A stretch of 64,000 nt of DNA, from the NCBI GenBank assembly GCA_002269645.1, contig NIVC01002305.1, positions 62,001 to 126,000 on the forward strand. The letters are read 5' to 3'. The position numbers and the translations under genes were made by a program. Positions 7,879 through 59,826 of this stretch are shown here, piece by piece. Origin of the DNA: Macrostomum lignano (taxonomy: Eukaryota). Positions within the stretch are counted from its first letter, which is position 1; every line of letters starts with the position of its first letter. The notes under the pieces were generated by a model. The model was not told where the DNA came from. It saw only the letters and a program-made list of their open reading frames with translations, and did no database searches.

Positions 7879-7952
<74 letters not shown>

Positions 7953-8383: not shown

Positions 8384-10019
8384 TTTTAGAGTCAGACAGA
8401 CATTGCCTGACATTCTGCGCAGTACCCCAGCCAACAATGTCTCAAACCCTAATTTTACACAAATGTGCTCCATTTTATGTCTACCTCTATCCTATTAACT
8501 ATTAACAAGTTTTTGTTTGTGTATGGCCTTAGATTTCAGAATACATGCAAAAGTAGTTCCGGGTATTGGAATTCCCCGGGTTCAAAATCCGCGGGTTTCA
8601 ACAGCTTGTGCCAATTATAAAATAAATTTATTAAATCTAGGAACCTCTAGCAACTTGCACTGATCTTAAGGCCATAAACTAAATTCAAACTAATTTCTAT
8701 AAATACCTCTTTAACCTATCTAAAAACACTTGCTATTCAATTATCCTTGTTGTTTAACATTCCTTTCCCTCAATATTTCCAAAAATTTTCTTAAAATTAA
8801 ACAAAAAATGGAATCGTATTATTATAATATTCAAATTAAACAACTGCTCTAATAACCTCAGGAAAACAGACATCCTTAAAAACACAAAACCTAGGTTTTT
8901 GCATTTGCATATACAAGCATTAGACCCTACAGAGAATTATAACTAAGATGAAGCAACAATGATTAAGCAGTTATATATCTCTTAGGAATGTAAGAAAAAA
9001 AACCAAAAAATTAACCTACATAAAAGTCGAGCATTAATAAAAATTTCTATATTTGCTAAAATATTTAAGGTCTGATTTAAAAAAAACTTTTTTCCAAACA
9101 TATTTAGAAATGAAAATACTTAGAACTTATCGTTAATCTTAAAACTGGGTTCTTACCCAATATACATGCACAAACCCCTTGATTTACATTGGCTATGCAA
9201 CTTAATTTTAGTCAAAAAATGCAACTTACCTATGAATGAAAGTGTAAAGCAAAAAAATAATGCAAAATCAATTTTGGGTAAATGGCAAAATTTTTCCCAT
9301 GATTGTCTTCCTATATACTAAAAATGATAATCTTGCTGGCTTGCTTGTATGCAATTGATTTTCTCCTAAACAGCTGAATTGATTTTTATAAGACTAAAAG
9401 ACTTGCACCATTTGATCAGAATATATCCTATGACAGTACATATGTCTAAGCTAAGAAATTGCTCAATGCTAAAGGGATTAAATAATCAAAAAACATGCTT
9501 TTTTGCAAAGGTCAGGCAGCTCTTTTGACTTGAAATGCATTGTAAGAATGTTAGAAAAAATACTAATTGGTTGAATTCTGATTCTGGAATAGTTTGCATC
9601 ATAACTAAATTGTAACTCTAACTTGAATTGTCACAGTATTAAAAATGCAGTGTAAAAGCATAGCACTAGACTTGATTTAGATTGTGTAATAATATAGTTA
9701 ACTGATATTGACTGACTAAGAAATTTGATTATGTCATAACTGCCTTGTATGATATACTCTATGCTTGGAGTTTTGAAAGTGTTGAATTATATTTTAAGTG
9801 CTAAAATTCATATTATCAAAACAATGCAAGCTAGCCTATAGGTGAACTACTGACTAAACTGCTAAATGCGAAACAATGGTTCAAATTTTTAGAGTAAAGT
9901 TTTTTAAACAAAAACTTGTTTTTTTAGTTTTTTAAGTAAAATTTAAAAGTATTTTTTTGGATTTTAAAAAAACTTTAAAAAGAAGTGTCATGTGAAAAAT
10001 AAAAGAATCGTCATAAAAA

Positions 10020-13493: not shown

Positions 13494-13916
<423 letters not shown>

Positions 13917-32235: not shown

Positions 32236-34941
32236 TTTCAAAATCAGCCCTCCTGGCCTGTCTGTTTCGGCTGGACTTTTTTCGTAGCAAATTTATTGTA
32301 TTAGAACTCCATACCAGTTTGCTAGAGGTTTAGTTTTGTTAATATAGTATGCTTGTCTATAGTAATAGAATGACACGAACTTTGCTCAAACCGTGTCTCT
32401 AGCTTGTTTTTGCGGAAATTTAGCCCAGTGCTGCACACTTTTTTGCCACACCTTAGCGAGGTAAAATAATTCTATTTTTTCCTTTATTACCAACCTACAT
32501 TTACTATTCATAGTAGTTTTTTGTCTGCCTTAAAGAAGCAAACACTTGCCGTTAAATTAGTTACTTTTAGTTTCTCGGCTACCGGGATCCTGTGCCCCAG
32601 GTGTAGCCAGAAATATGATCGCTAGTTTCCTGTACACCTTGAACTTTGAAATATTTCAATTTCTACCTATCTTTCATTATTTAATAAGCTCTTTCCCATA
32701 TAATAGTTTGGCCTAGTAACTATTTTGTAGTGAGAATTCATTTTGCCCCATCAGCTTTCAGCCAATCGAATACTTGTTCGTTGTTGTTTAGCTTCAATCA
32801 GTATCTCTAATAATAATAAATCATTTTAGTTGAAATCTATCCAGCCTTAGGAAGACATTTTATTATTCATGCATCAGTTACATATTTTGGCTATCTCGCT
32901 AAAACTGCAATATAAGATGTATATCTACGTATATACATTTGCATTGTCAACTTTAGATTTAGAAAAAATATTAATAATCAACCACTTTATTTTCTTACAT
33001 AAAAATTTGCGCATATTCTTCTATTTACAATGTCTCTCTTCTTCAAACTTATAAGAACTGGGAAAAATAATCCAAAGACTCGAATTGGCTTATTTTTTAT
33101 TGTTTCTTCTGTTTTTTATTAAATTGTTCTCAATACAATCAAATTTTTGCAGTTAGACAGGATTAGCCGTATAAATAATCAACATCATTTGAATATTTTC
33201 TTAATGCCAATTGCCTACCAAAGTTTCATACTGGCGAATTATTTTCGTCTTTCTCTTTATTTTGGTTAATTTTCACAATTAGCCCAGGTGTCTGTCACAT
33301 ATTCATATCAAACAGCATATTTTATTTTTCCCAGACTAACTTAATCCATCGTCTTGACTTTTTCTGTTTTCCTAAAAGTCGACCATCTTTTTGAGCAAAA
33401 GAAAGATGACAAAGTTTCAACAAAAAAATCGAAAAATACTATTAAAAACTATGGTACGGATATATTAGTACTTGTAGCGTACACCTGTTCTGCAACATGC
33501 TGCCCTGTAATTTTCTAATATTACTTACATAATTGGTATGCATTTTTGCTTATTATCATAATTGAATTGACCCATAATCCTGAGCCGACACCTACATCTT
33601 GCTGTCAGCTGATGCCCATTTTACATGTCTCCCTGGTGGTTTCGCTTGAAGACCGAACTCTCAAGTGCTTGAGCAGTAGTTATAGACTATTGAACCATCT
33701 TTTAACTAGGCCAATAAGAAGGCTAACTTCAGTTTTTGTTTGTTTGTTTTTTCATTCATTTCTCCCTGTCATCTTTTTGCGCGAATTTAATTTTTTTCTC
33801 TTTTGAATAACTCCAACTCGATCTGTGTTGTAGGTAGCGACTTTATTAGAATAATAAAAAGTAGTGTACATTACATAATAAGGAGTTCGTTACTATGAGT
33901 AGGATAGTACAAAAGTTATTTAATGTGTTGTTAAATTATTTTATTTGTCGCTCTACCCTTAGCTCTACGCGAATTGATCAATTTATTGCATCTGTTTATA
34001 AGACAATAATTTTCGATTGAATTAATTAGCACACTCACGCACTCTTATAGTTATAGTACAGTCTCCGACTCACTTGCTCACGTTGCTCACTCCATCGTAT
34101 TTACACCTTTATAATGTCTACAGTATGGCCGCCTTTGAAACGTATTTTTTAGCAACTGGCAAAGCCACACATCGTCCTTAATAGCGCAACTACTACTGAC
34201 ACCAATTAGTAGTATGTCTAGACACTTTCAGCATTATTTGTCATGGCGTGTTAAAATAATAAGAAAGCAGAACTCCAGCGCAGAGATAAACAGGTGTGAT
34301 TAGATTGGATCAACTTTGATCAATTCATGATGAATGGTATATATTTGCTTTTGTGTTCGTGCTAATCCAATTATTTACGGTAATCTGGTCTGGTCAAGTA
34401 CAGGTAAAATCAGATTTGCACAATGGAATAATCAAAATGCCGCACGTTGATTGTCATTCGCAAATTATCTCGGAGTTGGATCATTAAAATGAATCGGCTA
34501 ATTTTGGCAATTCATTGTACTCTTATATATCGAATCTTGCACATATTGCCGCAAAAAAGGAAGCAAGAAGAAAAGGCACTTGCGGAAGCAAAAAAGCAGA
34601 AAAAAGAACACGAAAGAAAAAATCAATTCCGCCATTCTTGTTAAATGGTCTCTGTAAATACTTGCAAGGCAGAGGAAATACTGCATAAATGGAAGATTGA
34701 ATTTAAAAAATCTAAAAGAATACAATTTTTGATAGAGATTTGCTGAAAATATAGCTCGCATAAATTCTGGAAAAAAAAACAAAAAGTTCATAGAATTCTC
34801 ATAACATGGGAAGTATAATTCTTGATATTGGATCACAAAGAAGTTCTGCTTTAATAAAATCAACAAATTTGGTCTACATGAGCAACATAGGAACACAACA
34901 ATATATTCTACAGCTTGATCAAGGCTGATTGACAGATAGTC

Positions 34942-35533: not shown

Positions 35534-35635
35534 GAAGAAAGTGACGGAAATATAAAAAATTAACAAGTGACCTTAAAGGAGGATCAAGTAGTTGACAGTA
35601 AGAACTTCGTGTGAGTTGCTTAATTCTAGTAAAAA

Positions 35636-38600
35636 TTAGTAAGCTGCAGTTGAACTCACAGCCGGGCTCGTTGATGAAGCTAACTTAAAAAGTTTATCGA
35701 TTTGATCGAACAGCTGACCAGCCGAGGGTCTGTCCGAGCTCCAGCAGCGGTTGCGCAATTCCTGCCTGAAATATATTTCAGATTAGTATTTACGCTGGTA
35801 AGTTATTTGAGACGATTCTCCATGTATTAAGGATTTGAGTATCAATGTGCTTAGAGGCGTGTTTATGAAGATGATTGAAGGCGATTATCAAAGTAACTAG
35901 GGGTGCATGGTTATGATTATTAACGTAATTAGATGTCATTAAATGTGATTGGCAATGTTATTTGGGTTGATTACTTCAACCGAGGTAGTTATCAAAGTAA
36001 TTATAGATGATGATCAAGGCAATTACTAAAGTGATTAGAGGAAATTGTTGATAGAAAATTACATTACCATCAGGAGCCACCGGGGGGGGGGGCAGGGGGG
36101 ACATGCCAATGCTTTTTCTCCTCCACCCCACCTTGTGACCCGTTGTGGTATCAAAATTATTTCTTCAGGCGCCAAAATATAGCGCCGCCGTCGGCGCTAA
36201 AATGAGTGCCTGCGGCTCCAAAATGAGTGCCTGCGGCGCTAAATGAGTGCCTGCGGCGCTAAAATGAGTGCCTGCGGCGCTAAATGAGTGCCTGCGGCGC
36301 TAAATGAGTGTATGCGGCGCTAAAATGAGTGTATGCGGCGCTAAATGAGTGCCTGCGGCGCTAAAATGAGTGCCTGCGGCGCTAAATGAGTGTATGCGGC
36401 GCTAAAATGAGTGTATGCGGCGCTAAAATGAGTGCCTGCGCCGCTAAAATGAGTGCCTGCGCCGCTAAAATGAGTGTCTGCGGCGCTAAATGAGTGCCTG
36501 CGCCGCTAAAATGAGTGCCTGCGCCGCTAAAATGAGTGTCTGCGGCGCTAAATGAGTGCCTGCGCCGCTAAAATGAATGCCTGCAGCGCCAAAATAAGCG
36601 CTGACAACACCGATTCTCAAATACTGGCATGTAGGAATTTAGTCATGTACGTGTTAAATTCTCGGCTTTGTCCCCCCACCATAAAATCCATGGCGACGCC
36701 CCTTATTACTATTAGAACAAAAACTTTCACACGCACAACAGTCACTTACAGCTGCCACAGCTGACTAGTTGACTTGTACTGACAGGCAAACTTTTCCGAA
36801 TCTGCGGTCAGTGCGCTAACAAGAAACGACTGGAGCTCGGCGGCAGATTTAGAAGCTGTTAAGCTGGTTAAATGATTCACCAACTGTTCGTCTGTGTAGC
36901 CTGACAGCGGCTGGCTGGCCATGGTGAACACTTCAAGGAGTACTACGCCCATGGACCTTTGTGGATGGCGGGTGAACGGCGGTTACAATGCGATTCTGTG
37001 CAATGAGAGGGCGATTCTGTGTAATTTGAGGGCGATTCTCTGTGGAATTAGAGAGCGATTCTCTGTGTAATGAGAGGGCGATTTTAGACGACAGCAAGAG
37101 CGAATTTTCAGACGACTCTTTAGGCTCCTATTGTAATGTAATGTAAGTATTGCACTCACTCACCACACATTAGTCTCGAGTGAGTGATCTTTAACTTTTA
37201 GACTGCCGTTGGACTCCTCTGTGTTGAAATTGAAATTCTCTGGAGCCAGCCAGCGCAACGGAATCAGCTGACCTTCCAGCAATACGTAATCATCCTGAGT
37301 GCGGATGGAAACTTTGCATTATTTTGTAGCCTTCAATCAATTACAGGTGGGAGATGGGACTGATGGACAGGTGGGAGATGGAACTGATGGACAGGTGGGA
37401 GATGGGACTGATGGACAGGTGGGAGATGGAACTGATGGACAGGTGGGAGATGGGACTGATGGACAGGTGGGAGATGGGACTGATGGACAGGTGGGAGATG
37501 GGACTGATGGACAGGTGGGAGATGGGACTGATGGACAGGTGGGAGATGGGACTGATGGATAGGTGGGAGATGGGACTGATGGACAGGTGGGAGATGGAAC
37601 TGATGGACAGGTGGGAGATGGGACTGATGGACAGGTGGGAGATGGAACTGATGGACAGGTGGGAGATGGGACTGATGGACAGGTGGGAGATGGGACTGAT
37701 GGACAGGTGGGAGATGGAACTGATGGACAGGTGGGAGATGGGACTGATGGACAGGTGGGAGATGGGACTGATGGAGAGGTGGGAGATGGAACAGATAGAC
37801 AGGTAGGAGATGGAACTGATGGACAGGTGGGAGATGGGACTGATGGACAGGTGGGAGATGGAACAGATAGACAGGTAGGAGATGGAACTGATGGACAGGT
37901 AGGAGACGAAACTGATAGACAGGTAGGATATGGAACTGATGGACAGGTGGGAGATGGAACTGATAGACAGGTAGGAGATGGAACAGATAGACAGGTGGGA
38001 GATGGGACTGATGGACAGGTGGGAGATGGGACAGATAGACAGGTGGGAGATGGAACAGATAGACAGGTGGGAGATGGGACTGATGGACAGGTGGGAGATG
38101 AAACTGATGGACAGGTGGGAGATGGAACTGATGGACAGGTGGGAGATGGAACTGATAGACAGGTGGGAGATGGAACAGATAGACAGGTAGGAGATGGAAC
38201 TGATGGACAGGTAGGAGACGAAACTGATAGACAGGTAGGATATGGAACTGATGGACAGGTGGGAGATGGAACTGATAGACAGGTAGGATATGGAACTGAT
38301 GGACAGGTGGGAGATGGAACTGATAGACAGGTAGGATATGGAACTGATGGACAGGTAGGAGATGGAACTGATAGACAGGTAGGATATGGAACTGATGGAC
38401 AGGTAGGAGATGGAACTGATAGACAGGTAGGATATGGAACTGATGGACAGGTAGGAGATGGAACTGATAGACAGGTAGGATATGGAACTGATGGACAGGT
38501 AGGAGATGGAACTGATAGACAGGTAGGATATGGAACTGATGGACAGGTAGGAGATGGAACAGATAGACAGGTAGGATATGGAACTGATGGACAGGTAGGA

Positions 38601-41600
38601 GATGGAACAGATAGACAGGTGGGAGATGGGACTGATGGACAGGTGGGAGATGGAACTGATGGACAGGTAGGAGATGGAACAGATAGACAGGTAGGATATG
38701 GAACTGATGGACAGGTAGGAGACGAAACTGATAGACAGGTAGGAGATGGAACAGATAGACAGGTAGGATATGGAACTGATGGACAGGTAGGAGATGGAAC
38801 AGATAGACAGGTAGGATATGGAACTGATGGACAGGTAAGGAGATGGAACTGATAGACAGGTGGGAGATGGAACTGATGGACAGGTAGGAGATGGAATAGA
38901 TAGACAGGTGGGAGATGGGACTGATGGACAGATGGGAGATGGAACTGATGGACAGGTGGGAGATGGAATAGATAGACAGGTGGGAGATGGAACAGATAGA
39001 CAGGTGGGAGATGGGACTGATGGTCAGGTGGGAGATGGGACTGATGGACAGGTGGGAGATGGGACTGATAGACAGGTGGGAGACGGGACTAATAAACAGG
39101 TGACCACATAGACCAGCACTCACCCTGTGCTCCACCTCTGTACAACCGTAGTCGCCAATCTTCACAACCAGATTGTCAGTCAATCGACAGTTCCTGGCGC
39201 CAATATCCTGATAGATGAATCCTTTCTCGTTGAGAACTGCCAGGCCTCGGCAGGCTTGGGAAGCAAATCGGAGAGCGAGCGAGTCCTCCAAACACCTGTG
39301 ACCGCCGTCCGTGATGAGCGAGCGGAGGTACGACTTCAGGTCCGTCTGGAAATGGTAGATGGAACAAATTGTTCATCAGCGAATAGTTTTCTCTACTTAC
39401 TACTAACGAGTGAGTTATAAGTAGCAGGCTTGCAAATAGTAAGTAAATTAGTTTGAAAATGTTATTTCAACTCGATGAAATTCACTCCCCTGTGAGACAG
39501 TTGGATAAGTGGGAGATAGGACTGATGAATATACAGGTAGGAGATGAGACTGATGGACAGGTAGGGGATCGGAGATGGGACTGATGGACCTGTGGCAGAT
39601 GGGACTGTTGAACAGGTAGGAGATGGGACTGATGAATAGATATAAGATGGGACTGATGGACATGTAGGAGATGAGACTGATGGACAGGTAGGAGATGGGA
39701 CTGATGGATAGATATAAGATGGGACTGATGGATAGATATAAGATGGGACTGATGGATAGATATAAGATGGGACTGATGGACATGTAGGAGATGGGACTGA
39801 TGGACATGTAGGAGATGGGACTGATGGACAGGTGGGAGATGGAACTGTAGAATCGATAAAAATGTGGATCATGCCATCATCATGGTGATAAGATTGACAT
39901 TTCTCACCAGGGTAGTCTCCATGACAGCCAGGTAGGGCTCCGCTGTGGTGCACAGGCCCATCAGTTTTAGCACGCACGGATCAACGCACTCTTTATAAGC
40001 TTGAATATCCGCCAGGAAGTGCAGCCGGTCTTTCTCGGCCAGTTCAACCGAGGCTTCGTTGGACAGCAGGCGAACGATCACTCGCGATCGGAGAGTTTCG
40101 CCGTACCGGTTGCACTCGGCATCGATGACGGGGCCGAACCAGGCCTGGCCCAGTTCGCTTAGGAAGAAAAGGTGCTTCCGATCCATGTGGAGCAGGTTCG
40201 GGACTGCTTGGGGACAAGGGTGATGGACACGACTGTCTGACAACTGATGGACACGACTGTCTAACAAGTGATGGACACGACTGTGACAGATGATGGACAA
40301 GACTGTCTAACAGATGATGGACAAGACTGTCTGACAGGTGATCGACACGACTGTCTAACAGATTATGGACACGACTGTCTGGCAAATGCTGGACACGACT
40401 GTCTGACAGCTGATGGACAAGATTGTCGACTGATGGACAAACAAGTGATGGACACGACTGTCTAACAGGTGATGGACACGACTGTCTAACAGGTGATGGA
40501 CACGACTGTCTAATAGATGATGGACACGACTGTCTAACAGGTGATGGACACGACTGTCTAACAGGTGATGGACACGACTGTCTAATAGATGATGGACACG
40601 ACTGTCTAACAGGTGATGGACACGACTGTCTGACAGGTGATGGACACGACTGTCTAACAGGTGATGGATACGACTGTCTAACAGGTGATGGACACGACTG
40701 TCTGACAGATGATGGACACGACTGTCTGACAGATGATGGACACGACTGTCTGACAGATGATCGACACGACTGTCTAACAGATTATGGACACGACTGTCTG
40801 GCAAATGCTGGACACGACTGTCTGACAGCTGATGGACACGATTGTCGACTGATGGACAAACAAGTGATGGACACGACTGTCTAACAGGTGATGGACACGA
40901 CTGTCTAACAGGTGATGGACACGACTGTCTAATAGATGATGGACACGACTGTCTAACAGGTGATGGACACGACTGTCTGACAGGTGATGGACACGACTGT
41001 CTAACAGGTGATGGATACGACTGTCTAACAGGTGATGGACACGACTGTCTGACAGATGATGGACACGACTGTCTGACAGATGATGGACACGACTGTCTGA
41101 CAGATGATCGACACGACTGTCTAACAGATTATGGACACGACTGTCTGGCAAATGCTGGACACGACTGTCTGACAGCTGATGGACACGATTGTCGACTGAT
41201 GGACAAACAAGTGATGGACACGACTGTCTAACAGGTGATGGACACGACTGTCTAATAGATGATGGACACGACTGTCTAACAGGTGATGGACACGACTGTC
41301 TAACAGGTGATGGACACGACTGTCTAATAGATGATGGACACGACTGTCTGACAGGTGATGGACACGACTGTCTAACAGGTGATGGACACGACTGTCTAAC
41401 AAGTGATGGACACGACTGTCTAACAGGTGATGGACACGACTGTCTAACAGGTGATGGACACGACTGTCTAATAGGTGATGGACACGACTGTCTAACAGCT
41501 GATGGACACGACTGTCTGACAGGTGATCGACACGACTGTCTAACAGGTGATGGACACGACTGTCTAACAAGTGATGGACACGACTGTCTAACAGGTGATG

Positions 41601-42352
41601 GACACGACTGTCTAACAGGTGATGGACACGACTGTCTAACAGGTGATGGACACGACTGTCTAACAGGTGATGGACACGACTGTCTAATAGGTGATGGACA
41701 CGACTGACTGACAGCTGATGGACACGACTGTCTAACAGGTGATGGACACGACTGTCTGACAAAGACGATGGATAAGACTATCTAAAGGGTGTGGACAAAT
41801 GTTACAAAAATCTAACAGGCCCATTGCTAGAAGCCATGAACCATAAAGAACTCACGCAGAATAACACCAGCAGACTTTGGCACCAATTCGAAACTCAATC
41901 GCATTCTTGGTCGCAGGAAATTCTTCGGCTTCTGTTGTACAATCGCGGCCAGATCATGGGAAGAACCAGCAGTTGATCGAATTCCAGTCGCCTCATTGTT
42001 CATCGATATTGAAGCATCATTTGGCGGTGGCAGCATGCCAAATTCAGTCATTGTGCGATTGTCAGCCTGTGAAGCTGTGATATTTGCTGTAGACTGCGAC
42101 TCTGTGATGCTCTGATTCCAATCTCCATCTAGCACAAAGTTCTGTGAAATTGAAAAACAAGTTATAGAACTTGAGCTATGCTCTGAAACATAAATTATTT
42201 AAATAGAATCTGCTTACCTTATATAAGTCAATATTTTTACAGCAAGATGTGCATTGAAACACCAGGACTCCAATTGCAAAAAAACAGGCAGTAGCCAAAA
42301 TTGCAAATAAAATGGTGGATGACAATGGTAGGCTAGAAATATCTTGTAGCAT
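35636..42352 (-). CDS. Lemur tyrosine kinase / AATK (LMTK)-like single-pass membrane kinase, ~469 aa, possible pseudokinase
   Basis: Exons 42352-42218 (TM followed by CC), 42141-41856, 40206-39908, 39345-39124, 37294-37164, 36956-36750, 35765-35636; GT-AG and phase-compatible. LMTK hallmarks ELGQAWFG, YQDIGARNC, KIGDYG, IPLRWLAPE, NVWSMGV. Confidence 0.85.
36071..36704. mobile_element. hAT-type MITE in kinase intron 6 containing a 21-22-bp minisatellite (36200-36590)
   Basis: Ends CAGGAGCCACCGGGG... and ...CATGGCGACGCCCCTT. 8-bp TSD ATTACCAT (36063-36070) / ATTACTAT (36705-36712). Internal unit aaatgagtgcctgcggcgcta; a relic of the same unit lies at ~298-345. Confidence 0.75.
37330..39105. 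repeat. 24-bp minisatellite, kinase intron 4
   Basis: Unit gatggacaggtgggagatgg(g/a)act, ~73 copies. Confidence 0.97.
39500..39845. repeat. 24-bp minisatellite of the same family, kinase intron 3
   Basis: Unit gatggacaggtaggagatgggact with variants. Confidence 0.9.
40215..41765. repeat. 24-bp minisatellite with higher-order structure, kinase intron 2
   Basis: Unit gatggacacgactgtctaacaggt; a variant block recurs at offsets of 419 and 347 bp. Confidence 0.95.
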
Positions 42353-43614
42353 TTTGTAGCAATTGATTTTACTAAGTCTGGAACTAATAATATAGTGGTA
42401 CAAATATCTATGCAAATATATTTCTTAGTTTTAGATGTGATATTTATTTAGAATATTATTGATAAAAAATTAAGGCATTGTTAGTAAAAAAAGTGTCTAA
42501 TTAAGTGATATAATTTCTTTTTATCTAATATTTTTAACCAATTATATTATATTATTATAAAACAATTTTCTTAGAATATTAAGATAGGCCTAATTAATTT
42601 TTAAAAACAATTATCCTTAACTATATATACTAGCTAACTTTCAGTTTGAGTCTTGCGTAATTCTTAATTTTTAGTCATTCTTGTCCCAACCTTTCAAAGA
42701 ATAAAGATAAAACATATTGATTATTTAAATTATAATAATACTTTTTTAAAATACTCAAAAACAAAAAAGCTTAAAATAAAAAAATAGACATTTATATAAT
42801 TGTAACAAGGTATTAAAAAACTAAAAAACCAACACTTTCTATTATTCTAGAAAATACTGTGTCAGTTCATTCATAGTTCAGCTTAGCATTAGTTAGTTTG
42901 GTAACTAAAAAGATGTAAATCTAAATTTTGTAACTGGAAGAACAATCGCATACTAAAATAGCTAATTTAAATAATGAGATACTGGCACTCGGATTTTACA
43001 GTAAAATTAGATTAAAGTACTAATGCAAACAATGCCCTGACTACATATTTCAAGAAATGTAAAATGCAGTCTTTGAATCCTTGAAATTTATTAAATTGCA
43101 TTCGATAAAAGCAGAAATATTCGTGAAAACACACTGAACTCACTAGACAAAGAAAGAACGAAAAATAAGGAAAAGAATTGATTTGAAAAGGGTGAATGTA
43201 TATCCACATGTACTAATACTTAGGTTGCATTCCTAGAACTTCGTAAAATCGAATCTTATAAGATTTAGTCTACAGAGTGAAACAAACTATGATCAATAAT
43301 ATCATCAAAAGCCAAGAAAATAATCAAAAAAGTCATAGAAATAAAAAGCCACTTAGCAGCATGCTTTTAATTATAAGTAATCCATTACCTATTTTCATTT
43401 TGGCTTCATTATTGCGCCACTATCACTGCGAGCTTCGAGCTATATATTTTACTTTTACGCCTGAATTGCAGCTCTGTCAGTGTCAAAATTGCATCGAAAA
43501 CAATTTAAAAAGTACATTTTGACTTTCTCATTGTCCATCATTGAAAAATTCGCGTGCTACGTGCATTGAGAGAATTACATACTATATAATTCTGCAGAGC
43601 AATGGATAAATAAT

Positions 43615-43732: not shown

Positions 43733-44765
43733 ATTCTTTGCATTGTTTTTCTGTTTGACGATCCTACAGCTAGACAATACATAATATGGTTTGTAGTAAA
43801 GTTCTGCATTAAAATGTGAATAATGATCGTCTAATTGCTAAACAATGTCTAGACCATTACAAACCAGACTCTATTTTTACGCGTATTAATGTACCAAGCA
43901 ACTTCAGTTATACTGTACATGTACAGTGTATATTACATGTACAGTAAAACTGATGATCGTTTCAGAAAAACTCCTATTATGTAACACGCCGAATCGATCT
44001 GGTTTTCTAGGCACATGAATCAAATCATTTATTTATTTATCATGCAAGGGCAGAAAGTCAAATAAAGAAAATTGTTTAGTGTTGGATAAAACTTCCAGAA
44101 ATGATGAGAAATCCCGGCCTCCTGGCTCCTATTATTTCTCTCCTGCTCTTCCGATAACATGTACTTTGTGATCAAATACTTTGTGATCGAAAATCATGTA
44201 CAGAAATAAATTCTTGTTTCAAAAATGCACATGCAGTTTATGCAAATGTTTGCAGTCATTATAAAAACCTTAACTAATGCAGAGCTTGCTCATAAAAATT
44301 GAAGGGGCGCCATAGTGCATTAATTTCTCACCCAATCCCGACCATATCTCAGCGGTTGAACTGTCTACGAGTATAAAAACCACACGAAACCATTTTGTGT
44401 GCATGAACTTTTAGAGGGACGAGTTGTAGTCGAAATTTGCACATTTACGAGCAACATTTAAACGTTTCTTTCCGCTAATCACACCAGAATGTGCATGAAG
44501 CGCGCCAACGCGTACTCCTACGCCAGAGAACTCAGCTTGACTCAGATCTTCGGGGCAGTATCCGCTTTGCTCAGACTTTTAGCTCGTATTAATACTTCAA
44601 GCCACAACTCAGAACACTGCAGCTATAGCTGATCGGTTGTACAGATAAAGTATACAAACAGCTACATTTACATACATAGAAGCTGTCCACCACAACACAA
44701 AATAAATACTGAGTGCTAAATTGAAAAGATATCGAAACCTAGCCACTGAAAAATCCATTCAGATC

Positions 44766-47700
44766 ATGTTTTCCAATCTACTGTCAGCATTTTTCCAATC
44801 AATCGCTGTTGTCTTCATGCAGGCTTCTTCAATTCAGCAGTCAACTGATGAACCGACTGACCAAGAGTTCATGACGGCGATAGCCGCTGGTAATCTGGCC
44901 TTAATTCGCCACTGTTTGAAAAAGCGATCAATGAGTAGTTTTGATAGATTGATCAGTTTCCATGGAAATCAGTTGTCGCCACTACATTTGGCGTGCGCCA
45001 CTGAAAACAGCAAAGTTGTTGATCAGTTGACTAGTCTCGGCTTTGACGGGAACATTCAGGATCGAAGCAATGGCGCCGCGCCGCTGCACATCGCCTGTCA
45101 GTCCGGTCGGCCGGCTTCCGTTGAGCCACTCATCAAAGCGCAGGCCGATGTCAATCTGACTGACAGACACGGCGCCTCGCCTCTGTTCATCGCTGCCCAG
45201 GATGGTCATCATCAGATTGTCAGCCTGCTGATCCGGGCCAAAGCTGACGTGAATTTGGCCGCTAAGAATGGCATGACATCGCTGCATATTGCGTCTCAAG
45301 AAGGCAATTATCAGGTTGTCGAGCTGCTTATTCAAGCCTTGGCCAATGTTAATATTCGAGATAGAGAAGGTGCCACACCTCTATACCTTGCTTCGCAGAA
45401 TGATCACATAAAGGTAGTTCGTCTGTTAATTAAAGCTGGAGCAATGCTGAACAGCCAGACTAACAAGAAGATGTCGCCATTGCACGTTGCATCGCAGAAT
45501 GGTCACCAGAGAATTGTGCAGGCCCTTGTTAATGCCGGTGCCAATGTCAACAGCCAGCAATCTGACGGTGCGACGCCTCTGTACTTCGCATCGCAGAAAG
45601 GTCACTATGCTGTGGCTCTAATCCTTGTCAAAGCTCATGCAGATGTAAATCTTCCAATTCATTATGGTGCCATTCCGCTTCACGTAGCCCTAGTCCAAGG
45701 TCACAATGACGTCATCAAGTTGCTAATCGAAGCTCGCTCTGATGTTGACTATCCTATGACGAACGGACAAACCCCGCTGTACATCTCAGCCGATCATGGC
45801 AATCGACAGACTGTTCAGTGCCTCATCAACGCCCAGGCCGACGTGAATTGTCGGCGAAGGGACGGAGCCACGCCGCTGTGCATCGCTGCTCAGAACGGTC
45901 ACAGTGCGGTCGTGCAGTCCTTAATCGGAGCTCAAGCCGATGTTGACATTCGAGGATTGAATGAAATGTCGCCTTTGTACCTCGCGGCGCAAGCTGGTCG
46001 GGATCAGGTGGTCAAGCTGCTTGTCGATGCTGGAGCAGCAGTCAATCTGCAGCAGAAGGATGGCGCTACGCCGATGTACATAGCCAGTCAGCAAGGTCAT
46101 CACCGAGTAGTTGAGCTGCTCATCCGAGCTCAAGCCGACGTTAATCTGTCGCGAATCGATGGAGCAACTCCAGTGTGCATTGCTGCTCACTTTGGTCGGG
46201 ATAAAGTGATGGAGTTGCTTATTGAGGCTGGAGCTAACGTAGCAGATGCTGTTTATGATGGTAAGACACCAATACAGATTGCTGCCGAAGAAGGACATTC
46301 GAGGGTGTACGCGGTGTTAAAGAGTGCAGTGCTGAAGATGGACTTGTCGATGGAAGAGGACGATACGATGAACAACTGTCAAGATCCTGGAGCACCTGAA
46401 GACAATGAAAATTGGGATTATGATGAGTGCGTACATTTACAACTGAGTATTTTGTCACTTAGTCCCTGACTCTTTCATTAATTAGTTACCGGACTCGACT
46501 CCCGGTGCAGCTTTATTAACCTGTACATGTAGTTCACTGTGGAATGTTGACCCAGGGCTTCGAGCTCACAATTGCCAACCCCAAGGCACAGATAGTTCCT
46601 TGATAGTTATTTAGTTAGTTAGTTAGCTATTTATACAGTTAGTTAGGTTATATGTAGTTAGTAAGTTGAGTTTAACTTATCCTATTCAGACACGAACTGA
46701 GCCAGCAGCTGCATCAGGCTCTGACTCGATCCGGCTTCACGGACTCCCGGGCCGCTATGCAAAGCTCACTGGCCGACGCCCTGCAGAGAATTCTCCGTCT
46801 GAGATTGAATCACAATGAAATCCACGTAGTTGGCAGCTACTCAGAGGGTTGGGGCAACAATTTGACAACGTTGGACGGCAGGACAGATTTCGAGTCGGAC
46901 ATTGACGTGATGCGGCTGCTGCACGGCAGACTGTATCACCTGAGAAGTGCGTGCCAGTGCGTAGGCAAGGACGTCGAGACTGTGGACTATGACAATGGAC
47001 ACATAGCGTGCAAAGGATTTGGTAATTTGGCTTGGGCTTGAGGAAATGTCTGCATTCTTTTGCATTCTTGTACGTTTAAAATTGGCTGTAGGCCTGATCC
47101 TTACATTGATGAAACTCTGAATCTGAAGCAGTTAGAAGCAGAATTTACAAAAACCATTTAATTTGCACGCAAGACAACGATGGGAAAACGCCCAGTAATC
47201 TTTCTGATAATTCGATTTCTGAATGCCACTTAATTCTCACCACAATCAACCGCATGTCCCGGCAGCGTCAACTCCGGCCAGCGCGTCTGACGGCTCACAC
47301 GCGAAGCCGGCTGTCGATCTGGTGGACGCCTGTCGTCTCTGCTGCTACCCTCCCATCGCCCCGCTACAGCCAGACAGAATCGCCAAGTCCAACATTACCC
47401 AGTCGGTGCTTCGGTCGCTCAATCGCGAATTGACGTCGCCTTCGTCGCCCTGTCACGTGGTGCACGCAGCTCCTCCCGGACAGGGGGGAGAACAACTCAG
47501 AGTGAGCACAACCTTCTTGGAGAGGCGTCTTTTGCGGAGCCTTAGCACCCTTCAGGGCCAGCTGTTCGTTGCATTGAAGTACCTAGTTAAGAAGGTCATC
47601 TGTCACGACGACGGCTTCAAAGTGAAAGGTTTAAAAGCCTATCATGCCAAGACGATCACGTTCCAGATGCTGGAAGCGACTCCCGCTGATCAATGGAAGC

Positions 47701-48713
47701 CGGAAAACCTGGTAGGCCTCATCAGGCAGTCGCTGCAGAGGCTGCTGGACAACTTGGAGAGCGCCTGCAACTCGGACAGCGCTGAGGGGCCAATCATGAG
47801 TCACTTCTTTCTGTGCGACACGGCCCTCTATCTGAAAGGCGTGGACCGCAGTTCGTCTGAGAAAATGAAGCTGGTCCTAACAAACGCTGCTACTGGGTTG
47901 AGAAAGACCATCGATCAGCTTCCTAGGCTACTGTTGAAGTTCAAAGCCAATCTGAGAGAGGTTACAAACTCTGGCAGGTTCTACTTTCATCCGTTTCTCA
48001 TCCTGCCGAATTTGCAAGCTAATCCGGTTAGCAGCACAGCTGCAAGTCTCGAATATCACGAGATCTTTGATGTAGTGAGGGAGTCTCTGGTTCAACTGGC
48101 TGAAGAAGATTGCAGCGCTACTGCGCAGGAGAATCTGGCTAAGCTCATTGCCAGATTGCCTGATTGTGCTCTGACTGCTCGAGAGTCGCTAAAGGTGCTG
48201 GCTTGTCTTAAGTTTAGCTATCGAGATGCCGCTGTCAGGACGCTGGCCTATTGTGACAGGCACGAGGTGAGCCGGGGAATTCCCTGGTCAGCTAATCAAT
48301 CCAGGGCAGAGGCTACTGCCGAACTTGTGATGCAATTTATGAAGGCCAACGACTCCGCCTGGAAGTTTTGCTTTAAGTTTGCCAAGCGTCCAGAATTGAG
48401 ATTTCTATCGCCGACTCTGGTGCACTGTTTCCCGCAAGTTCTGGAGAATGACGCCAGCTGGTACTTTGTCAATTTTGACGCTCTAATGCAGTGTCTGCGG
48501 CTTGAAATTACGCCTAACGACCTGAGGGCTCAACTTTGGGTTTGGGACGTCGCTAAACGAGAGGATGCCGACGTGCTTGAGCTGATGACGGCCGCTTCTT
48601 ACTGCAACGACAAGAAGCTGATAGACAGATTTATTGAGCGAATTCGCCGGATCAGCTTCATTCCCGACTGGCTGAGAGAAAATCTGAAGTTGAAGCTTCG
48701 AGATGCCTGGTGA
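44766..48713 (+). CDS. Ankyrin-repeat / Mab-21 (cGAS-like receptor, cGLR) fusion protein, ~1146 aa, 3 exons
   Basis: Exons 44766-46426 (14 TPLH-type ANK repeats plus one partial), 46690-47021 (GSYSEG...SDIDVM) and 47266-48713 (VDLV; LRVSTTFLERRLL; LKYLVK; LKAYHAKTITF; W..ENL; SHFFL). Introns GA|gtgcgt..ttcag|A (phase 2) and G|gtaatt..ggcag|CG (phase 1) keep the frame; total 3441 nt. Confidence 0.8.
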
Positions 48714-48775: not shown

Positions 48776-51360
48776 CTAGCCATTTAGCCCCCCGCTGGGG
48801 GGCATTAAAATAACACCGAGTGGTTTTTATTTTGGCCCAACAGTAAACCATTAATTTCCCTTTCTATTAATCAAAAATAACTTTTTCTCATTTTGAAAAA
48901 ATAAATTGCCATGAATCAAAACTTTCACCAGCAAAAAAGTTTCCTTCATCAGCCCAAAACCCTTTTTCAATCAGCAAATAGCTAGTGCTTATCCTTTCAA
49001 GCACAAACTCTTAGAGCATATCGTCATTGGCCTGGGCATATTCTGGTCCGCAGCAGGAGCTCAATATGCCAATCCCTGACGGCCTTTGACACCCCTCTTT
49101 ATTAGCCTAACTCAAAGAATCAAACCTTAAATAAAAACGCTGGTAGTTCCTATCAGCAGAATTCAGCATCACTTGTGTGTACTATTTCATTATCTGAATT
49201 AAATGAGCTACTTGAGCTGTACTACTTGACGATCTGACAATCGCTTAACAACCTAACCCCCTCCCCCCAAAAATTCAGCCATCCCCCATGAGCCTTGACA
49301 TCTCAGCAATTCCCCCAGTAGGCCTTGACATCTCAGAAATTCCCTCAGTAAGCATCGACATCGCAGCAATTAAACTCGAGCCTTGACATCTACGCAATTC
49401 TCTCAGGCCAGTAAGCCTTGACATCTACGCAATTCTCTCAGGCCAGTAAGCCTTGACATCTACGCAATTCTCTCAGGCCAGTAAGCCTTGACATCTACGC
49501 AATTCTCTCAGGCCAGTAAGCCTTGACATCTACGCAATTCTCCCAGGCCAGTAGGCCTTGACATCTCAGCAATTCCCCGAGTAGGCCTTGACATCTCAGC
49601 AATTCCCCGAGTAGGCCTTGACATCTCAGCAATTCCCCGAGTAAGCCTTGAAATGTCAGTAATTCCCACAGTAAGCCTTGAAATCTGAGAAATTCCCACA
49701 GTAAGCCTTGAAATCTCAGCAATTCCCCCAGTAAGCCTTGACATCTCAGCAATTACCCCAGTAAGCCTTGACATCTCAGCAATCCCCCGGTAAACCTTGA
49801 CATCTCAGCAATTCCTCTAAGAAGCCTTGACATCTCAAGAATTTTCCCAGTAAGCCTTGACATCTGAGCAATTCCCATGAGCCTTGAAATATCAGAAATT
49901 ACCCCAAAAAAGCCATGACATCTCAGCAATTCAACCAATAAGCCTTGAAATCTCAGCAATTCCTGAGATGTCTCCATAACAACCTGAAATTATCCCTTCC
50001 AATCCCAAAAACAGACTGCAGTCATACTCTAGCGGCCTAGAATTGTCCCGACAGCAAACAATAATTTACTCAGCAGTCCACAGTAGTCCACAGTTATCAC
50101 CTCAGCAGTTTGCAGCTATACGCTCATAAGTCTGGAGCAAAGATAAAAAGAGCAAAGAATATGGTCTGGAAAAGCTCCGTCTGCACATCTCACATCTTTA
50201 AATCTATGAAGTGATCCTCCAGACCAGACAATATGATCTATATGTCTGGAGGAACTACCTTAGCAGTTTGCAGTCTGTCCCCTTTGCAGTCTGCAATGAT
50301 TCTTTTGACAATCTGCAGTTCTTCTGTCGGCCGGCTCCTCAGTCTCCTGCTTAGCAAACTGCAATGATATTTTCAACAATAAAAATTTGCTAACAGTTTA
50401 GTACGACTCATTAATCAATTTTCGATACATATCGGCAGTTTTTTGCACAAATCAGCATTAAGCAATACCTTCATTCCTAAATAGCAAGCATCCCCCAAAA
50501 GAAAGCAATCGCAGCATCTCCCCCGTCAACCTTGTAATCTCAGCACTTCCCCCCATAAGCCTTTGAAACCTCAATTCGAGCGATTCTTCTAGTAAGCCAT
50601 GGCATATCGGCAATTCCCCATGGGCTTAAATTTCCCAGAAATTGCCCCAAAAAGCCATGACATCTCAGCAATTCCTGAGATATCCCCACAAAAACCTGAA
50701 ATTATCCCTTCTAATCCCACAAAACAGACTGCAGTCATTATCTTAGCAGCCTGGAGTTATCCCCTTGCAGTCTATAACTTTCATTAACATTAAGCACTTA
50801 TCCCCTCAGCAGCCTAGAACTGTCCCGTCAGCAAACCACAATAATCCACTCAGCAGTCCACAGTAATCCCCTAAACAACCTGCACTTAATTACTTAAACT
50901 GTACAGTTTTGAAACTGATGTCTTGTAGCTTTATAAGCATATTTCAAAAAATTTGATCTGTCTTAGTTGCTGGTTCATTGGGGACTATTATTCGCGCGAC
51001 TGAATACGTTTACACCAGCATTAAATATATACTCTTACCTCAACCTGTCTAAAATCTTAAATATGGGTTGCTTTGAAAGTTGTTAATTCAGCTATGCATC
51101 AGATATTATTTTATTGATTTTTTAATTTTTAGTACTCAACTTTAACGTCGCTATTGGTACCTAAAAATCCCGAATCCCGAATCCCTAATCTTAATTAATC
51201 CCTAATTCTTTAATCCCTATTTAAGAGTAAACAAATGTCTTTATTTTACCTGAACTACCTGATGTCTTTAAACTCCCCTTGAGCCACAGTATTTTAGCAA
51301 TTTCTCAATGACTCCTGACATATCTCAGCAATTCTTCCCGAAAGCCTTGACATCTCAACC
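48776..51360 (-). mobile_element. Helitron-like non-autonomous element (3' end at 48776) with the 30-bp minisatellite family (49280-49980; also ~50500-50690 and ~51300-51360)
   Basis: Perfect hairpin GCCCCCC-GCT-GGGGGGC (48787-48803), 7-nt spacer, then CTAG|T on the minus strand. The unit agccttgacatctcagcaattcccccagta resembles the reverse complement of the 10850-11050 unit. Internal duplication ~49890-50090 / ~50635-50870. 5' limit uncertain. Confidence 0.55.
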
Positions 51361-51579: not shown

Positions 51580-53435
51580 TTCCTCAGTCAGACAGGTCCT
51601 CTAAATCCAGCATCCTCGCGGACACCTCGCAGCATCCTCGCGTACATCAAGAACCAGCTATAGACCGCATCAGCAACTGCTGACGTTGCGGGATGGCCAC
51701 GCAGTCGGGCGGCTGCCATGATGCGTTGTCGGCGTCGGCAGGAAAGCTTGGACTGCACCGCGGAGCTGGGCGAGGAACTTGTCGTGGCCGTCGACAGGCT
51801 GGCCAGGCTGCAGGCACTCGCCAGGCACACAGAGGGGCGCTCCGTAGACCACAGCCTGGGCCGCATTCTTAAGCCCAAACTGCATTCGCAGGAACTCGAA
51901 GAGGCCGAACTGGGTGATGACGGCTGTCTTGGGCACATCGGCGGCGGCCATCGGCACCTGGTGGTAGCCACGCACCAGGTCGATCTTCGAGAAAACCGAG
52001 CACCCGGCCAGGCGCGCCGAGAAATCTTGGATGTGCGGCACCATGTAGCGGTCGGGGCACGGTGGCGTCGTTGAGTCGCTGAAAGTCGCCACCCGCCAGA
52101 GGCCTTGGGCACCATGTGCAGCGGCGAGGACCACGGGCTGTGGGAGCGGCGCACAATGCCGAGCTGTTCCAAGAGCCGGAACTCCTCCTTGGCCACCGCC
52201 AGCTTGTCCGGTGGCAGGCGGCGGGGGCGGGCGTGAACCGGCGGGCCGTTGGTCGGGATGTGGTGTTCCACACCGTGGCGAGGCTCTGCTATCTGAAAAC
52301 TGGGCTCAGTGAGGGTCGGGAATTCTGCCAGCAGCTGTCTGTACGGATCCGCAGCGGCGGCTGCGGTGAGCTGCAGTCCGGGCCCCGTGCTGCCTAGCAG
52401 ATGCACGCTGGCAAGCGATCGAGCGTCCATGAAGCCGCTGGTGCGGCAGGTCCACAAGCAGACCGTGGTAGCCAAGGAAGTCAGCGCCGATGAGCGGGCG
52501 GGAGACCTCGGCTAGGATGAACGGCCAGGAGCAGCGCCGGATTCCCAGGTCGAGCGTGAGCTGTCGCGTGCCGAAGGTGCGGATGGCGCTGCCGCTGCCG
52601 TTAGCCGCGTAGAGCGGCGGACCAGTGAGTGCAGGCGAGCATCGGTGCCGGTGACGGGTAAAATGCTCACCTCGGCGCCAGTGTCGACCAGGAAACGCCG
52701 GCCCGACTGGACGTCCGAAAAGAGGAGCAGGCTACTGTTGCTGCCGGCCGTCGAGCCGTTCACCGACGGCCGGCCTGGCCGTTTCCCTGGAAACTGCACG
52801 GAGGCTCACAGCGACGGGCCTTCGCCCCGAAACGGCGGTGGAAATGGCAGAGGCCGTCTTCCGAGCGTTGCCGCGGCTGCCGGTCCTGGTAGGGCTTGCG
52901 GTTGCTCTCGCTGAGGCCCGCGGTGGCCACCGACTGGGCATGCTGCTGGGCTGCGGGAACCACCGGCAGCTGCGCTGCTGCGCGTGGCTCGCTGAAGTCA
53001 GCGGTCGCCATGGCCATCCGGACATCGGCAGGCAGTTGCTGGCGGAACAACTCCTCGAAGATGAGGCAAGGCCGATGGTCTCCTAGCAAGGCCAGCATCT
53101 CATCCATTTAGTTCCGAAGGCAGTCGATCACCAAGTCCGGAGAGATTGAGCAGACGGCTGGCCCTCTGTTGCCCGGGTCTGGCCGAAAGTGCCGAGCAAC
53201 CATGTTTTCAGCGCGTTATACTTCTCTTATGTCGGCGGTGCCTCTGGTACGTCGAGAAGCCGTTCGGCTGTCTGCTGATCGAGCGCGGTGATAACACATG
53301 GCAATACTTGGTGTTATACAGACTTCGGCCTGTATAAACCAGGCCCTTAGGCTGGGAAGCCCAAAAGGTTGGCAGTTTAAGTGCGACGGCGGCTACGGCT
53401 GGGGCAGTCGGGCTCACCAATTTAGCGTCTCGCAA
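51580..53435 (-). mobile_element. Ty3/Gypsy LTR retrotransposon remnant, CsRn1/Kabuki-like clade, frameshifted and internally deleted
   Basis: PBS-like TGGTGAGCCCGA (53419-53408, near tRNA-Trp type). Gag LKLPTFW and CHCC knuckle CHFHRRFGAKARRCEPPC; protease FLVDTGAEVS; RT SPWSSPLHMVPK, FSKIDLVRGYHQ, FGLKNAAQ joined directly to the integrase-tail motif VYGAPLCVPGE. Matching LTR pair not found. Confidence 0.88.
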
Positions 53436-58110: not shown

Positions 58111-59062
58111 GTTTCTGGAATGAAGCAGAATATACCAACCTCTGATTTTCTATAGTCAACCAATAAGGCCAAAAGTACAAATGCAAAAATAGAGCCCCAA
58201 TTTGAGTAGCTAGCTATTTATGAGTGCTATTCATATATAAGAATAATATGCAAAAAGAAATATAACAAAAGAAAAAATTGTATAAAATGACATTGAAAAG
58301 CAACTAATAACAAAAGCTAATAAAAATATGGAAGAGCATAAAAGCCTTAGGCATAATATTAAACATGTTTACTTTGTCTGTTTTCTACTTTGTCATTTTC
58401 TATAACCCCTACCTTGCTCCCAGCCAGCTACCAGCTATGCCTATGGCCATTTTGCTACCTTGGTATTATTCTTTAAGCTTATCTATTAGGATTATTGTCA
58501 TACATGCGCAACCTCTAAAATTCGGTCGTCCGTGAGACTTAGTTTTAACAAAAATGTGACATAGTTTTGGGCCAAATATGCGACTTACATGTAAAAGAAA
58601 CCTTACAGCAAAAAACGCAACTTTGGGTAAACGGCACGAGTAACTATAACTGTTTTATTAAGGCAAAATGTCTCGTTATCTACTTAGGGTATTTATTTGG
58701 TTGGGCATTTTTGCAACTTACCTTGGTTGGCTACCAAATTGGTTGGCCAGATTTGCCCACTCAGCCGACTGTTTTGCATGTATGATTATTGTCTTTTTAG
58801 AAATTTTAGGTAGGTTAATTTTTTTTTCAAATTGTCTCCTCAAATAGTAATATATTTTCTATATAATATACATTCTTTATTTACCTATTCCTATTACCTA
58901 TGGTAAGGTTGACAGTGGAGAGGCTGAGAATAGAGGTTGAGAGTAGATAGAGGCTGAGAGTAGAGAGGTTCAGAGTAGAGAGGCTAGTTCACGTTGTTCT
59001 CAATCCCATTCCACGATACATGTAGTTTTTATCTAATGTGACTAAGCCAAGTGCTTTTAGTG

Positions 59063-59826
59063 CAGGGGTTGGCAAACTTTTTACCTCGATTGAGAACCCA
59101 GCTCATGACTGCCCTTCTAGTCCGCTTCGCTGGCCCCCAAAGCGAAGCGAGGAGTCCTGATGACAGCGGGCCAGAGGTGAGGAGAGAGGGTAAGGAATAG
59201 AGAAGAGAAATACAAGCATAGGATAAAGGAGAGGCGAAGGAATAAAGGAGAAGAGAGTTGATGAGAGGAGAGATTAAATACGAGCGGAGAGAGAGAAGAA
59301 GGGAGATTAATGGAGAGGAGAAAGGAGGAAAGGGAGAAGAGAATGAAGAGGAAAAGGGAGATGAGAGCAAAGAGGTGAGAAGAGTGGAGAGGATAGAGAT
59401 GACGAGAGAGGAGAGGAGAGAGGTGAGGGCAGAGATGAGAGAGGAGAGGGCAAAGATGAGAGAAAGAAAAGATATGAGGAGAGGGCAGACATGAGAAAGA
59501 AAAGATGAGAGAAGAGGGCAGACATGAGAGAGAGAATAGATGAGAGAGAGGGCAAGAGATGAGAGGAGAGGGCAGAGATGAGAGAGAGAAAGATGATACA
59601 GGAGAGGGCAGAGATGAGAGAGAAAAGAGAGAAGAGGGCAGACATGAGAGAGAATAGATGAGAGAGAAGAGGGCAAGACATGAGAGAGGAGAGGGCAGAG
59701 ATGAGAGAGAGAAAGAAAAGATTAGAGACGAGAGGGCGGAGATGACAGAGAAAAGATAAGAGACGAGAGTGCAGATGAGAGAAAAGATCAGAGATAAGAG
59801 GGCACTCCAATTTTGCTTACTTCTAT
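59063..59826 (+). mobile_element. hAT-like non-autonomous element with an internal GA-rich tract
   Basis: Starts CAGGGGTTGGCAAACTTTTT; gagaacccagctcatg matches aagaatccagctcatgg at ~7166; ends ccaattttgcttacttcta. Confidence 0.5.

Follow-up and report, generated by a model that had tools for sequence, protein, structure and literature searches.

A predicted ankyrin-repeat cGAS-like receptor gene in the flatworm Macrostomum lignano

Main

Do three neighbouring open reading frames (ORFs) in the genome of the flatworm Macrostomum lignano, one rich in ankyrin repeats and two resembling the halves of a nucleotidyltransferase (NTase), form a single gene, and is its product a cGAS-like receptor (cGLR)? 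The ORFs lie in a 64,000-nt stretch of contig NIVC01002305.1 (assembly GCA_002269645.1, positions 62,001–126,000 of the forward strand), called the window here; coordinates are window positions unless a contig is named, and the gene and all its features lie on the plus strand. An initial reading of the sequence alone had joined the ORFs through two phase-matched GT–AG introns into a protein of ~1146 amino acids (aa), described it as an ankyrin (ANK) array fused to a cGAS-like (Mab-21/cGLR) NTase and labelled it a candidate innate-immune sensor. We find that the locus, BOX15_Mlig021960g3, is a three-exon gene for an 1146-aa protein, and that the C-terminal part of this protein is predicted to carry a cGAS/Mab-21-fold NTase with a complete and conserved set of catalytic residues.

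Structure of the gene

The window contains plus-strand ORFs at 44721–46469, 46757–47041 and 47223–48713. Splicing of 44766–46426, 46690–47021 and 47266–48713 yields an open coding sequence of 3441 nt (1146 aa), and the spliced product is identical at 1146 of 1146 residues to PAA59037.1, a GenBank hypothetical protein whose coding span, NIVC01002305.1:106766–110713 in assembly GCA_002269645.1, covers the same 3948 nt. The route to PAA59037.1 was a profile search against 1.84 billion representative proteins, which gave an 1146-aa match whose cluster holds three M. lignano GenBank entries, PAA59037.1 being one of them. The three ORFs, the two introns and the protein length put forward by the sequence-only reading were borne out to the exact coordinate.

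Exon 1 (44766–46426), which is the N-terminus of PAA59037.1, holds the start codon, a short hydrophobic leader, the ankyrin array and an acidic linker, and comprises codons 1–553 plus 2 nt of codon 554. Intron 1 (46427–46689; 263 nt, GTGCGT...TTCAG, phase 2) has GT–AG ends and encloses a stop codon at 46467–46469 that is in frame with exon 1; its splice sites are the same in all three genomic copies of the gene. Exon 2 (46690–47021), placed by splicing, homologue alignment and an AlphaFold2 model, codes for the spine helices and N-lobe of the NTase, including the GS loop and the D-x-D strand. Intron 2 (47022–47265; 244 nt, GTAATT...GGCAG, phase 1) likewise has GT–AG ends, and homologues run continuously over its junction (...GHIACKGF, then ASTPA...). 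Exon 3 (47266–48713), defined by its ORF and by splicing, supplies the third catalytic Asp, the remaining NTase core, the Mab-21 C-lobe, a C-terminal domain and the TGA stop codon at 48711–48713. The phases are complementary at both introns, 2+1 at the first and 1+2 at the second, and paralogues align unbroken at junction 1 (...D(N)DLSQQLHSALTRSGF...) and at junction 2 (...NGH(I/V)xxxG(F/Y)ASxPA...). For this assembly the GenBank annotation has RNA-seq as its source, in the form of a genome-guided transcriptome (StringTie/TACO plus de novo assembly, with TransDecoder ORFs; PMC5730564), and therefore lends both introns indirect transcript support.

Past the stop codon, ATTAAA and AATAAA hexamers occur at 92 and 187 nt (region 48805–48905). 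An AG acceptor (ttcag followed by ATCATG; 44755–44768) lies 3 nt upstream of the start codon and could be a spliced-leader trans-splice site. Spliced-leader trans-splicing is common in M. lignano.

Two more full-length copies, g2 (NIVC01002078.1; 10 aa differences) and g1 (NIVC01001208.1; 20 aa differences), are found on other contigs, which fits the duplicated genome of the sequenced DV1 line (PMC5730564). Across the three copies the splice sites are identical and the exons are free of insertions and deletions (indels), the sole indels (21 and 39 nt) being in intron 1. Mismatches between copies amount to 2.5–2.7% in intron 1, 1.2–2.1% in intron 2 and 0.3–1.5% in the exons. The pairwise ratio of non-synonymous to synonymous substitution rates (dN/dS; three copies, small counts) is 0.22–0.34 in the ankyrin part and the NTase part alike. 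None of the three genomic copies is disrupted, and all are under purifying selection. Within the 64-kb window it is present as a single copy, and tandem paralogues sought there were not found.

Nucleotidyltransferase fold

Transitive homology, profile searches and structure prediction together settle the fold of the C-terminal part, which on this modelled and comparative evidence is a cGAS/Mab-21-fold NTase. A sequence search with the C-terminal 592 aa alone against the PDB gave no match. The family profile, by contrast with this single sequence, reaches bivalve and annelid proteins at E values of 1e-10 to 1e-14; nine of the ten such proteins looked up are outside the named M. lignano set and have Pfam Mab-21 and/or Mab-21_C matches above threshold. 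Precomputed matches to Mab-21_C (PF20266) exist for several paralogues, and distant bivalve relatives pass both the Mab-21 and the Mab-21_C models.

Two profiles were compared with solved structures. Profile A1 contains Macrostomum sequences only and profile A2 adds bivalve Mab-21 proteins, so that the strong PDB matches of A2 arise partly by construction and the repeat with A1 is the independent test. A1 matched cGAS chains at E 2.4e-5, over the C-lobe only. A2 matched 8gjy at E 4.6e-31 and 8gjw at E 1.3e-24, with profile positions 26–318 aligned to residues 31–352 of chain 8gjw_A. Alignment of the wider profile to human cGAS with hhalign gave a probability of 98.8% over the third-Asp strand and the C-lobe. 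The C-lobe helix bundle itself spans residues 768–852 (47574–47828), where a sub-threshold Pfam Mab-21_C match coincides with the hhalign and profile matches to cGAS and the motifs RVSTT and YHAKT lie close by.

Structure prediction depended on the depth of the alignment. With nine sequences AlphaFold2 left the N-lobe unmodelled (predicted local distance difference test, pLDDT, <50 at residues 41–144); an alignment of 43 sequences including bivalves fixed this and gave a model with pLDDT 92.9 and a predicted template modelling score (pTM) of 0.93. Foldseek against the PDB placed this model closest to the Crassostrea virginica receptor Cv-cGLR1 (8gjw; E 2e-7, template modelling score 0.55 on the target), followed by ~30 cGAS chains at E 4e-7 to 1.5e-4; the top 29 PDB matches were Cv-cGLR1 and cGAS, with probability 1.00. 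MAB21L1 scored ~4e-5 and MiD51/MiD49 1e-3 to 1e-2, and OASL (E 0.26) was not significant. Exons 2 and 3 thus match cGLR and cGAS structures both by Foldseek and by profile, and the ANK plus cGAS-like architecture first read from the letters is upheld by Pfam Ank, profile and fold evidence together: among the Pfam models Ank, Mab-21 and Mab-21_C the Ank match is strong and the Mab-21_C match sub-threshold, and the model lies closest to Cv-cGLR1 and cGAS.

Active site

Conservation at the putative active site was counted over 68 NTase domains of the Macrostomum family. The activation loop VVGSYSEGWG contains G602–S603 (46832–46837), each conserved in 67 of 68 domains and kept in distant bivalve Mab-21 proteins. 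Twenty residues past GS, D624-I-D626 (46898–46906) provides the first two catalytic acidic residues, D624 at 46898 (67/68) and D626 at 46904 (65/68). The third catalytic Asp, D682 in AVDLV (47316–47318), follows 53 residues past DIDV and is found in 64 of 68 domains and in 41 of the 43 sequences of the A2 alignment, which includes bivalves. The sequence-only reading had placed an intact signature at precisely these positions (GS at 46832, D-x-D at 46898/46904, third Asp at 47316), and all of them prove conserved in 64–67 of 68 domains, the same columns being kept in distant bivalve proteins. The resulting signature, VVGS-X20-DIDV-X53-VDL, has spacings inside the ranges that Li et al. set for cGLRs with the motif h[QT]GS X8-20 [DE]h[DE]h X50-90 h[DE]h (PMC9980059). 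In the hhalign alignment, RVSTT stands opposite RLSFS of cGAS and YHAKT opposite YHVKT.

The zinc thumb of vertebrate cGAS is absent, as had been noted from the sequence: no Cys or His occurs between LERRLL and LKYL, and when the profile is aligned with human cGAS the query skips 12 residues exactly at the H(X5)CC(X6)C thumb. Elsewhere in the domain, a hairpin of the N-lobe, placed after the D-x-D strand and ahead of the third-Asp strand, carries a His/Cys cluster, H637, C642, C644 and H658 (46937–47002), conserved in 63, 56, 63 and 62 of the 68 domains, respectively; C690 (47340–47342) and C727-H728 (47451–47456) are conserved too. Judged by its conservation, the cluster may be a metal site distinct from the cGAS zinc thumb.

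Flanking domains

The ankyrin array consists of 14 canonical 33-residue repeats at residues 67–532 (44964–46361), supported by Pfam Ank (E 8.3e-93, 13 stretches) and Ank_2 (E 3e-90) and by a regular-expression search at strict 33-residue spacing. A cap-like helix pair precedes the repeats (residues ~33–66), and the earlier count of '14–15' repeats corresponds to the 14 canonical ones plus this N-terminal cap.

Residues 1–22 (44766–44830) form a short hydrophobic leader, MFSNLLSAFFQSIAVVFMQA, with Kyte–Doolittle values of up to 1.6. A motif resembling it, ...AV(L/F)MQA..., also occurs in paralogues P0016 and P0033, and paralogues P0005 and P0007 start with MG...CC, which looks like a lipidation site. 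These N-terminal features may be a sign of membrane association in a subfamily. By computed charge the NTase core is moderately basic (isoelectric point, pI, 8.8), the linker is strongly acidic and the whole protein has a pI of 6.5; given this mixture, charge fails to discriminate nucleic-acid from protein ligands.

Downstream of the NTase, residues ~900–1146 (47970–48710) form an alpha/beta domain of ~250 aa with pLDDT mostly >90 that is conserved throughout the Macrostomum family. The domain has no Pfam match and no PDB match by Foldseek, sequence or profile, and the bivalve matches of the profile search stop at about profile position 330, short of it. It may serve as an additional module for regulation or ligand binding. 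Both parts of the ANK plus NTase make-up read from the sequence stand, but that description missed this conserved domain and was incomplete.

An expanded Macrostomum family

The profile search returned 738 proteins at E<=1e-3, with 85 cluster representatives (50% identity) at E<=1e-30. Among the strong matches looked up, those with an organism name are almost all from M. lignano, the others being a metagenome fragment (P0030) and a MetaClust entry (P0111). These sequence comparisons place the gene in an extensive group of paralogues that has so far been seen only in Macrostomum. Ankyrin Pfam domains are present in 26 of 39 first-round homologues, and the ANK–NTase order recurs in dozens of paralogues. 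Identity to paralogues is 31–64% in the NTase core, 23–44% in the ankyrin array and 28–54% in the C-terminal domain; the number of ankyrin repeats varies between paralogues, and the 14 found here exceed the number in many of them. If specificity were set by the ankyrin array and the C-terminal domain, faster-diverging flanks are what one would predict, although this pattern of identities is only suggestive.

Relation to known systems

The sequence-only reading left open whether this architecture had been described. It has: Li et al. 2023 (Cell; preprint PMC9980059) defined cGLRs across animals and show some with ankyrin or TPR modules (Fig. 1C, S2A), ANK–cGLR fusions being a named class, and list M. 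lignano PAA accessions carrying Ank_2 (Table S2). The architecture is therefore already described, not functionally solved, and the gene is a well-formed example of that class; its labelling as a candidate innate-immune sensor agrees with the family classification given there. PAA59037.1 was not found among the entries listed in the tables of Li et al. available to us (PMC9980059). A literature search returned no later paper characterising an ANK–cGLR or BOX15_Mlig021960g3 and nothing specific on Macrostomum together with Mab-21, cGAS or STING, and in the literature searched no ligand is reported for ANK–cGLR fusions.

The closest known systems are the ANK–cGLR fusions of M. lignano itself in Li et al., same-species paralogues that have the same order, ankyrin repeats at the N-terminus and then a cGLR NTase, and share the motifs GFxxSRA...VxGSxxEGWGNxL...SDxDV...GH...CCYP...CHxV...RVSTxxLER...LKTYHxKT. 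Five M. lignano proteins were cloned by these authors as numbers 89–93 of a 140-enzyme screen (PAA86972.1, PAA45980.1, PAA57558.1, PAA93208.1 and PAA68676.1; PMC9980059). The constructs as listed begin at or near the NTase part, with motifs as in PAA59037.1. The ANK–cGLRs of Stylophora pistillata catalogued by Li et al. have the same listed architecture and may be independent fusions.

Cv-cGLR1 (PDB 8GJW) is the closest structure. It lacks a zinc thumb, as does the M. lignano protein, and both belong to lineage-specific expansions; it differs in being a stand-alone NTase of ~350 aa, without an ankyrin array or a Macrostomum-type C-terminal domain, and identity is ~17%. According to Li et al., Cv-cGLR1 responds to nucleic-acid ligands (PMC9980059). 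With vertebrate cGAS the M. lignano protein shares the fold, the GS loop and the acidic triad, and it retains the RxSxS and YHxKT pocket motifs, whereas the zinc thumb and the disordered basic N-terminus are absent; the two are ~15% identical and are not orthologues. MAB21L1/2 and MiD49/MiD51 have the same overall fold (E 4e-5 to 1e-2) and match more weakly than cGLR and cGAS. Mab21L1/2/3 are described by Li et al. as having no predicted functional active site (PMC9980059), and in contrast to MAB21L1/2 the active site here is complete and conserved.

Genomic neighbourhood

Upstream of the cGLR gene, at ~35600–42400 on the minus strand, lies a protein kinase gene (Pkinase/PK_Tyr_Ser-Thr; annotated product 473 aa) whose introns hold long tandem-repeat arrays with strong GC/AT skew and, at 37.3–41.8 kb, artefactual repeat ORFs that reach 652 aa. 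Short-period tandem repeats at 49495–49977 (minus strand), 7463–8473 and 59029–59810 (minus strand) likewise give rise to spurious low-complexity ORFs in several frames, and one tandem-repeat array begins ~0.8 kb past the cGLR stop codon. Farther away are an intact single-exon histone H3 gene (13506–13916, plus strand; 136 aa, Pfam Histone E 1e-48) and a multi-exon CLU/CLUH (clustered-mitochondria) homologue (~22000–32300, plus strand), with CLU, eIF3_p135 and TPR_12 in successive ORFs. A piggyBac-type transposase (3908–5547, minus strand; DDE_Tnp_1_7 plus zf-Tnp_2) extends across two ORFs that are frameshifted or interrupted, and the element is probably decayed or domesticated. Overlapping ORFs at 51588–52475 (minus strand) look by eye like a retroelement pol fragment, with a GC content of 0.60 at 52–54 kb and no Pfam match at E<=1e-3.

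Discussion

What would such a protein do? We consider it probable, with moderate confidence, that the gene product is a ligand-gated cytosolic multidomain cGLR that makes a cyclic nucleotide signal. The enzyme would be inactive at rest, and ligand binding would reorder the GS activation loop. The ligand could be a protein or another non-nucleic-acid molecule, which the ankyrin solenoid, the C-terminal domain or both would recognize; alternatively, it could be a nucleic acid bound on the moderately basic core. The sequence-only reading had likewise envisaged an active cGLR in which the ankyrin solenoid may supply ligand input or autoinhibition, possibly in response to protein instead of nucleic acid; the charge of the core is compatible with nucleic-acid binding as well. 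The Asp triad, with two Mg2+/Mn2+ ions, would then join nucleoside triphosphates into a cyclic di- or oligonucleotide, and this product would activate a downstream receptor, STING or another. A STING search with the human cyclic-dinucleotide-binding domain, made with a word-index prefilter that is too insensitive for distant homologues and for the outcome to count as a negative in M. lignano, gave 174 candidates, vertebrate sequences only. M. lignano is absent from Table S5 of Li et al. (PMC9980059).

Several points weigh against this reading. The single-sequence Pfam scan gave Mab-21_C (PF20266) at E 2.7e-4 with 21.4 bits, below the cut-off of 24.1, and no match to PF03281. The residue preceding GS is Val, where the published motif has Q or T; in the M. 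lignano paralogues accepted by Li et al. this residue is M, L, F or T (PMC9980059), so the Q/T rule was evidently not strictly applied by those authors. In their Table S3, the 'Note' column, which marks 15 selected active enzymes, is empty for all five M. lignano paralogues, with poly I:C and double-stranded DNA supplied (PMC9980059). Flatworms are reported in earlier work to have lost both cGAS and STING (PMC4117786). An immune role, moreover, would follow from family membership and paralogue expansion, and from these alone. As to the paralogues that were not flagged as active, the family may need another ligand, may need the ankyrin or C-terminal parts, or may make no detectable product; Li et al. 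remark that numerous cGLRs seem to lack activity in vitro and give as the probable reason that the ligands are not known (PMC9980059).

It is possible, though somewhat unlikely, that the protein is an active NTase with a non-immune role, in which the ankyrin array recruits a protein or RNA substrate or localizes the enzyme, and the products are linear oligonucleotides or nucleoside monophosphates transferred to a macromolecule. Enzymes of many chemistries have the GS/DxD/D signature and the Pol-beta-type palm in common, the Pfam scan includes a weak match to an MTPAP-like palm domain (E 0.023), and ankyrin arrays typically dock substrates or partners. The paralogues, too, are not among the active cyclic-dinucleotide producers of the published screen (PMC9980059). 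However, the significant structure and profile matches are all to cGLR, cGAS, MB21D2 and MAB21L1 and none to poly(A) polymerases, terminal uridylyltransferases or other NTases; the cGAS pocket motifs RxSxS/T and YHxKT are kept; and immune receptors are the more typical setting for a big lineage-specific expansion whose repeat arrays diverge.

It is distinctly unlikely that the protein has a Mab-21 fold but no enzymatic role and acts as a scaffold or adaptor in the manner of MiD49/MiD51 or MAB21L1, binding a nucleotide or partner and using its ankyrin repeats for assembly. The significant Foldseek matches do include MAB21L1 and MiD51 (E 4e-5 to 1e-3), and the paralogues have no reported activity (PMC9980059), but cGLR and cGAS outscore both in fold and profile searches, and retention of the five catalytic positions in 64–67 of 68 paralogous domains would be unexpected if catalysis were dispensable. 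It is very improbable that the gene model is a pseudogene or an artefact of annotation or assembly that wrongly joins an ankyrin gene to a distinct Mab-21 gene, or links decayed fragments: retention of intron 1 would yield an ANK-only protein ending at 46469, and many WormBase-derived M. lignano models of the family are fragmentary or over-fused, but the RNA-seq-derived GenBank model is identical to the spliced product, the ANK–NTase order is found in dozens of paralogues with the junctions aligned continuously, and three copies with full ORFs, the same splice sites and dN/dS of 0.22–0.34 lead us to reject a pseudogene or mis-joined model.

Beyond the reading of the gene product as a ligand-gated cGLR lies a wider and more speculative one, which we hold to be rather unlikely: that the M. 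lignano ANK–cGLRs form an expanded Macrostomum-specific receptor repertoire, whose ankyrin and C-terminal domains recognize protein or other non-nucleic-acid cues and which signals through a non-STING receptor. If true, this would mean non-STING nucleotide signalling in a phylum otherwise reported to be without cGAS–STING.

The locus adds no new kind of system and is instead one well-formed, transcribed and selectively maintained member of its class. Two of its features, the C-terminal domain without a fold match and the conserved His/Cys cluster of the N-lobe, are not mentioned in the published catalogue text available to us. Most flatworms are reported to be without cGLRs (PMC9980059), and M. 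lignano, with dozens of them, is the exception. M. lignano is also a laboratory model with established transgenesis (PMC5730564), and its family offers a practical place to ask what a repeat-coupled cGLR senses and what it signals through.

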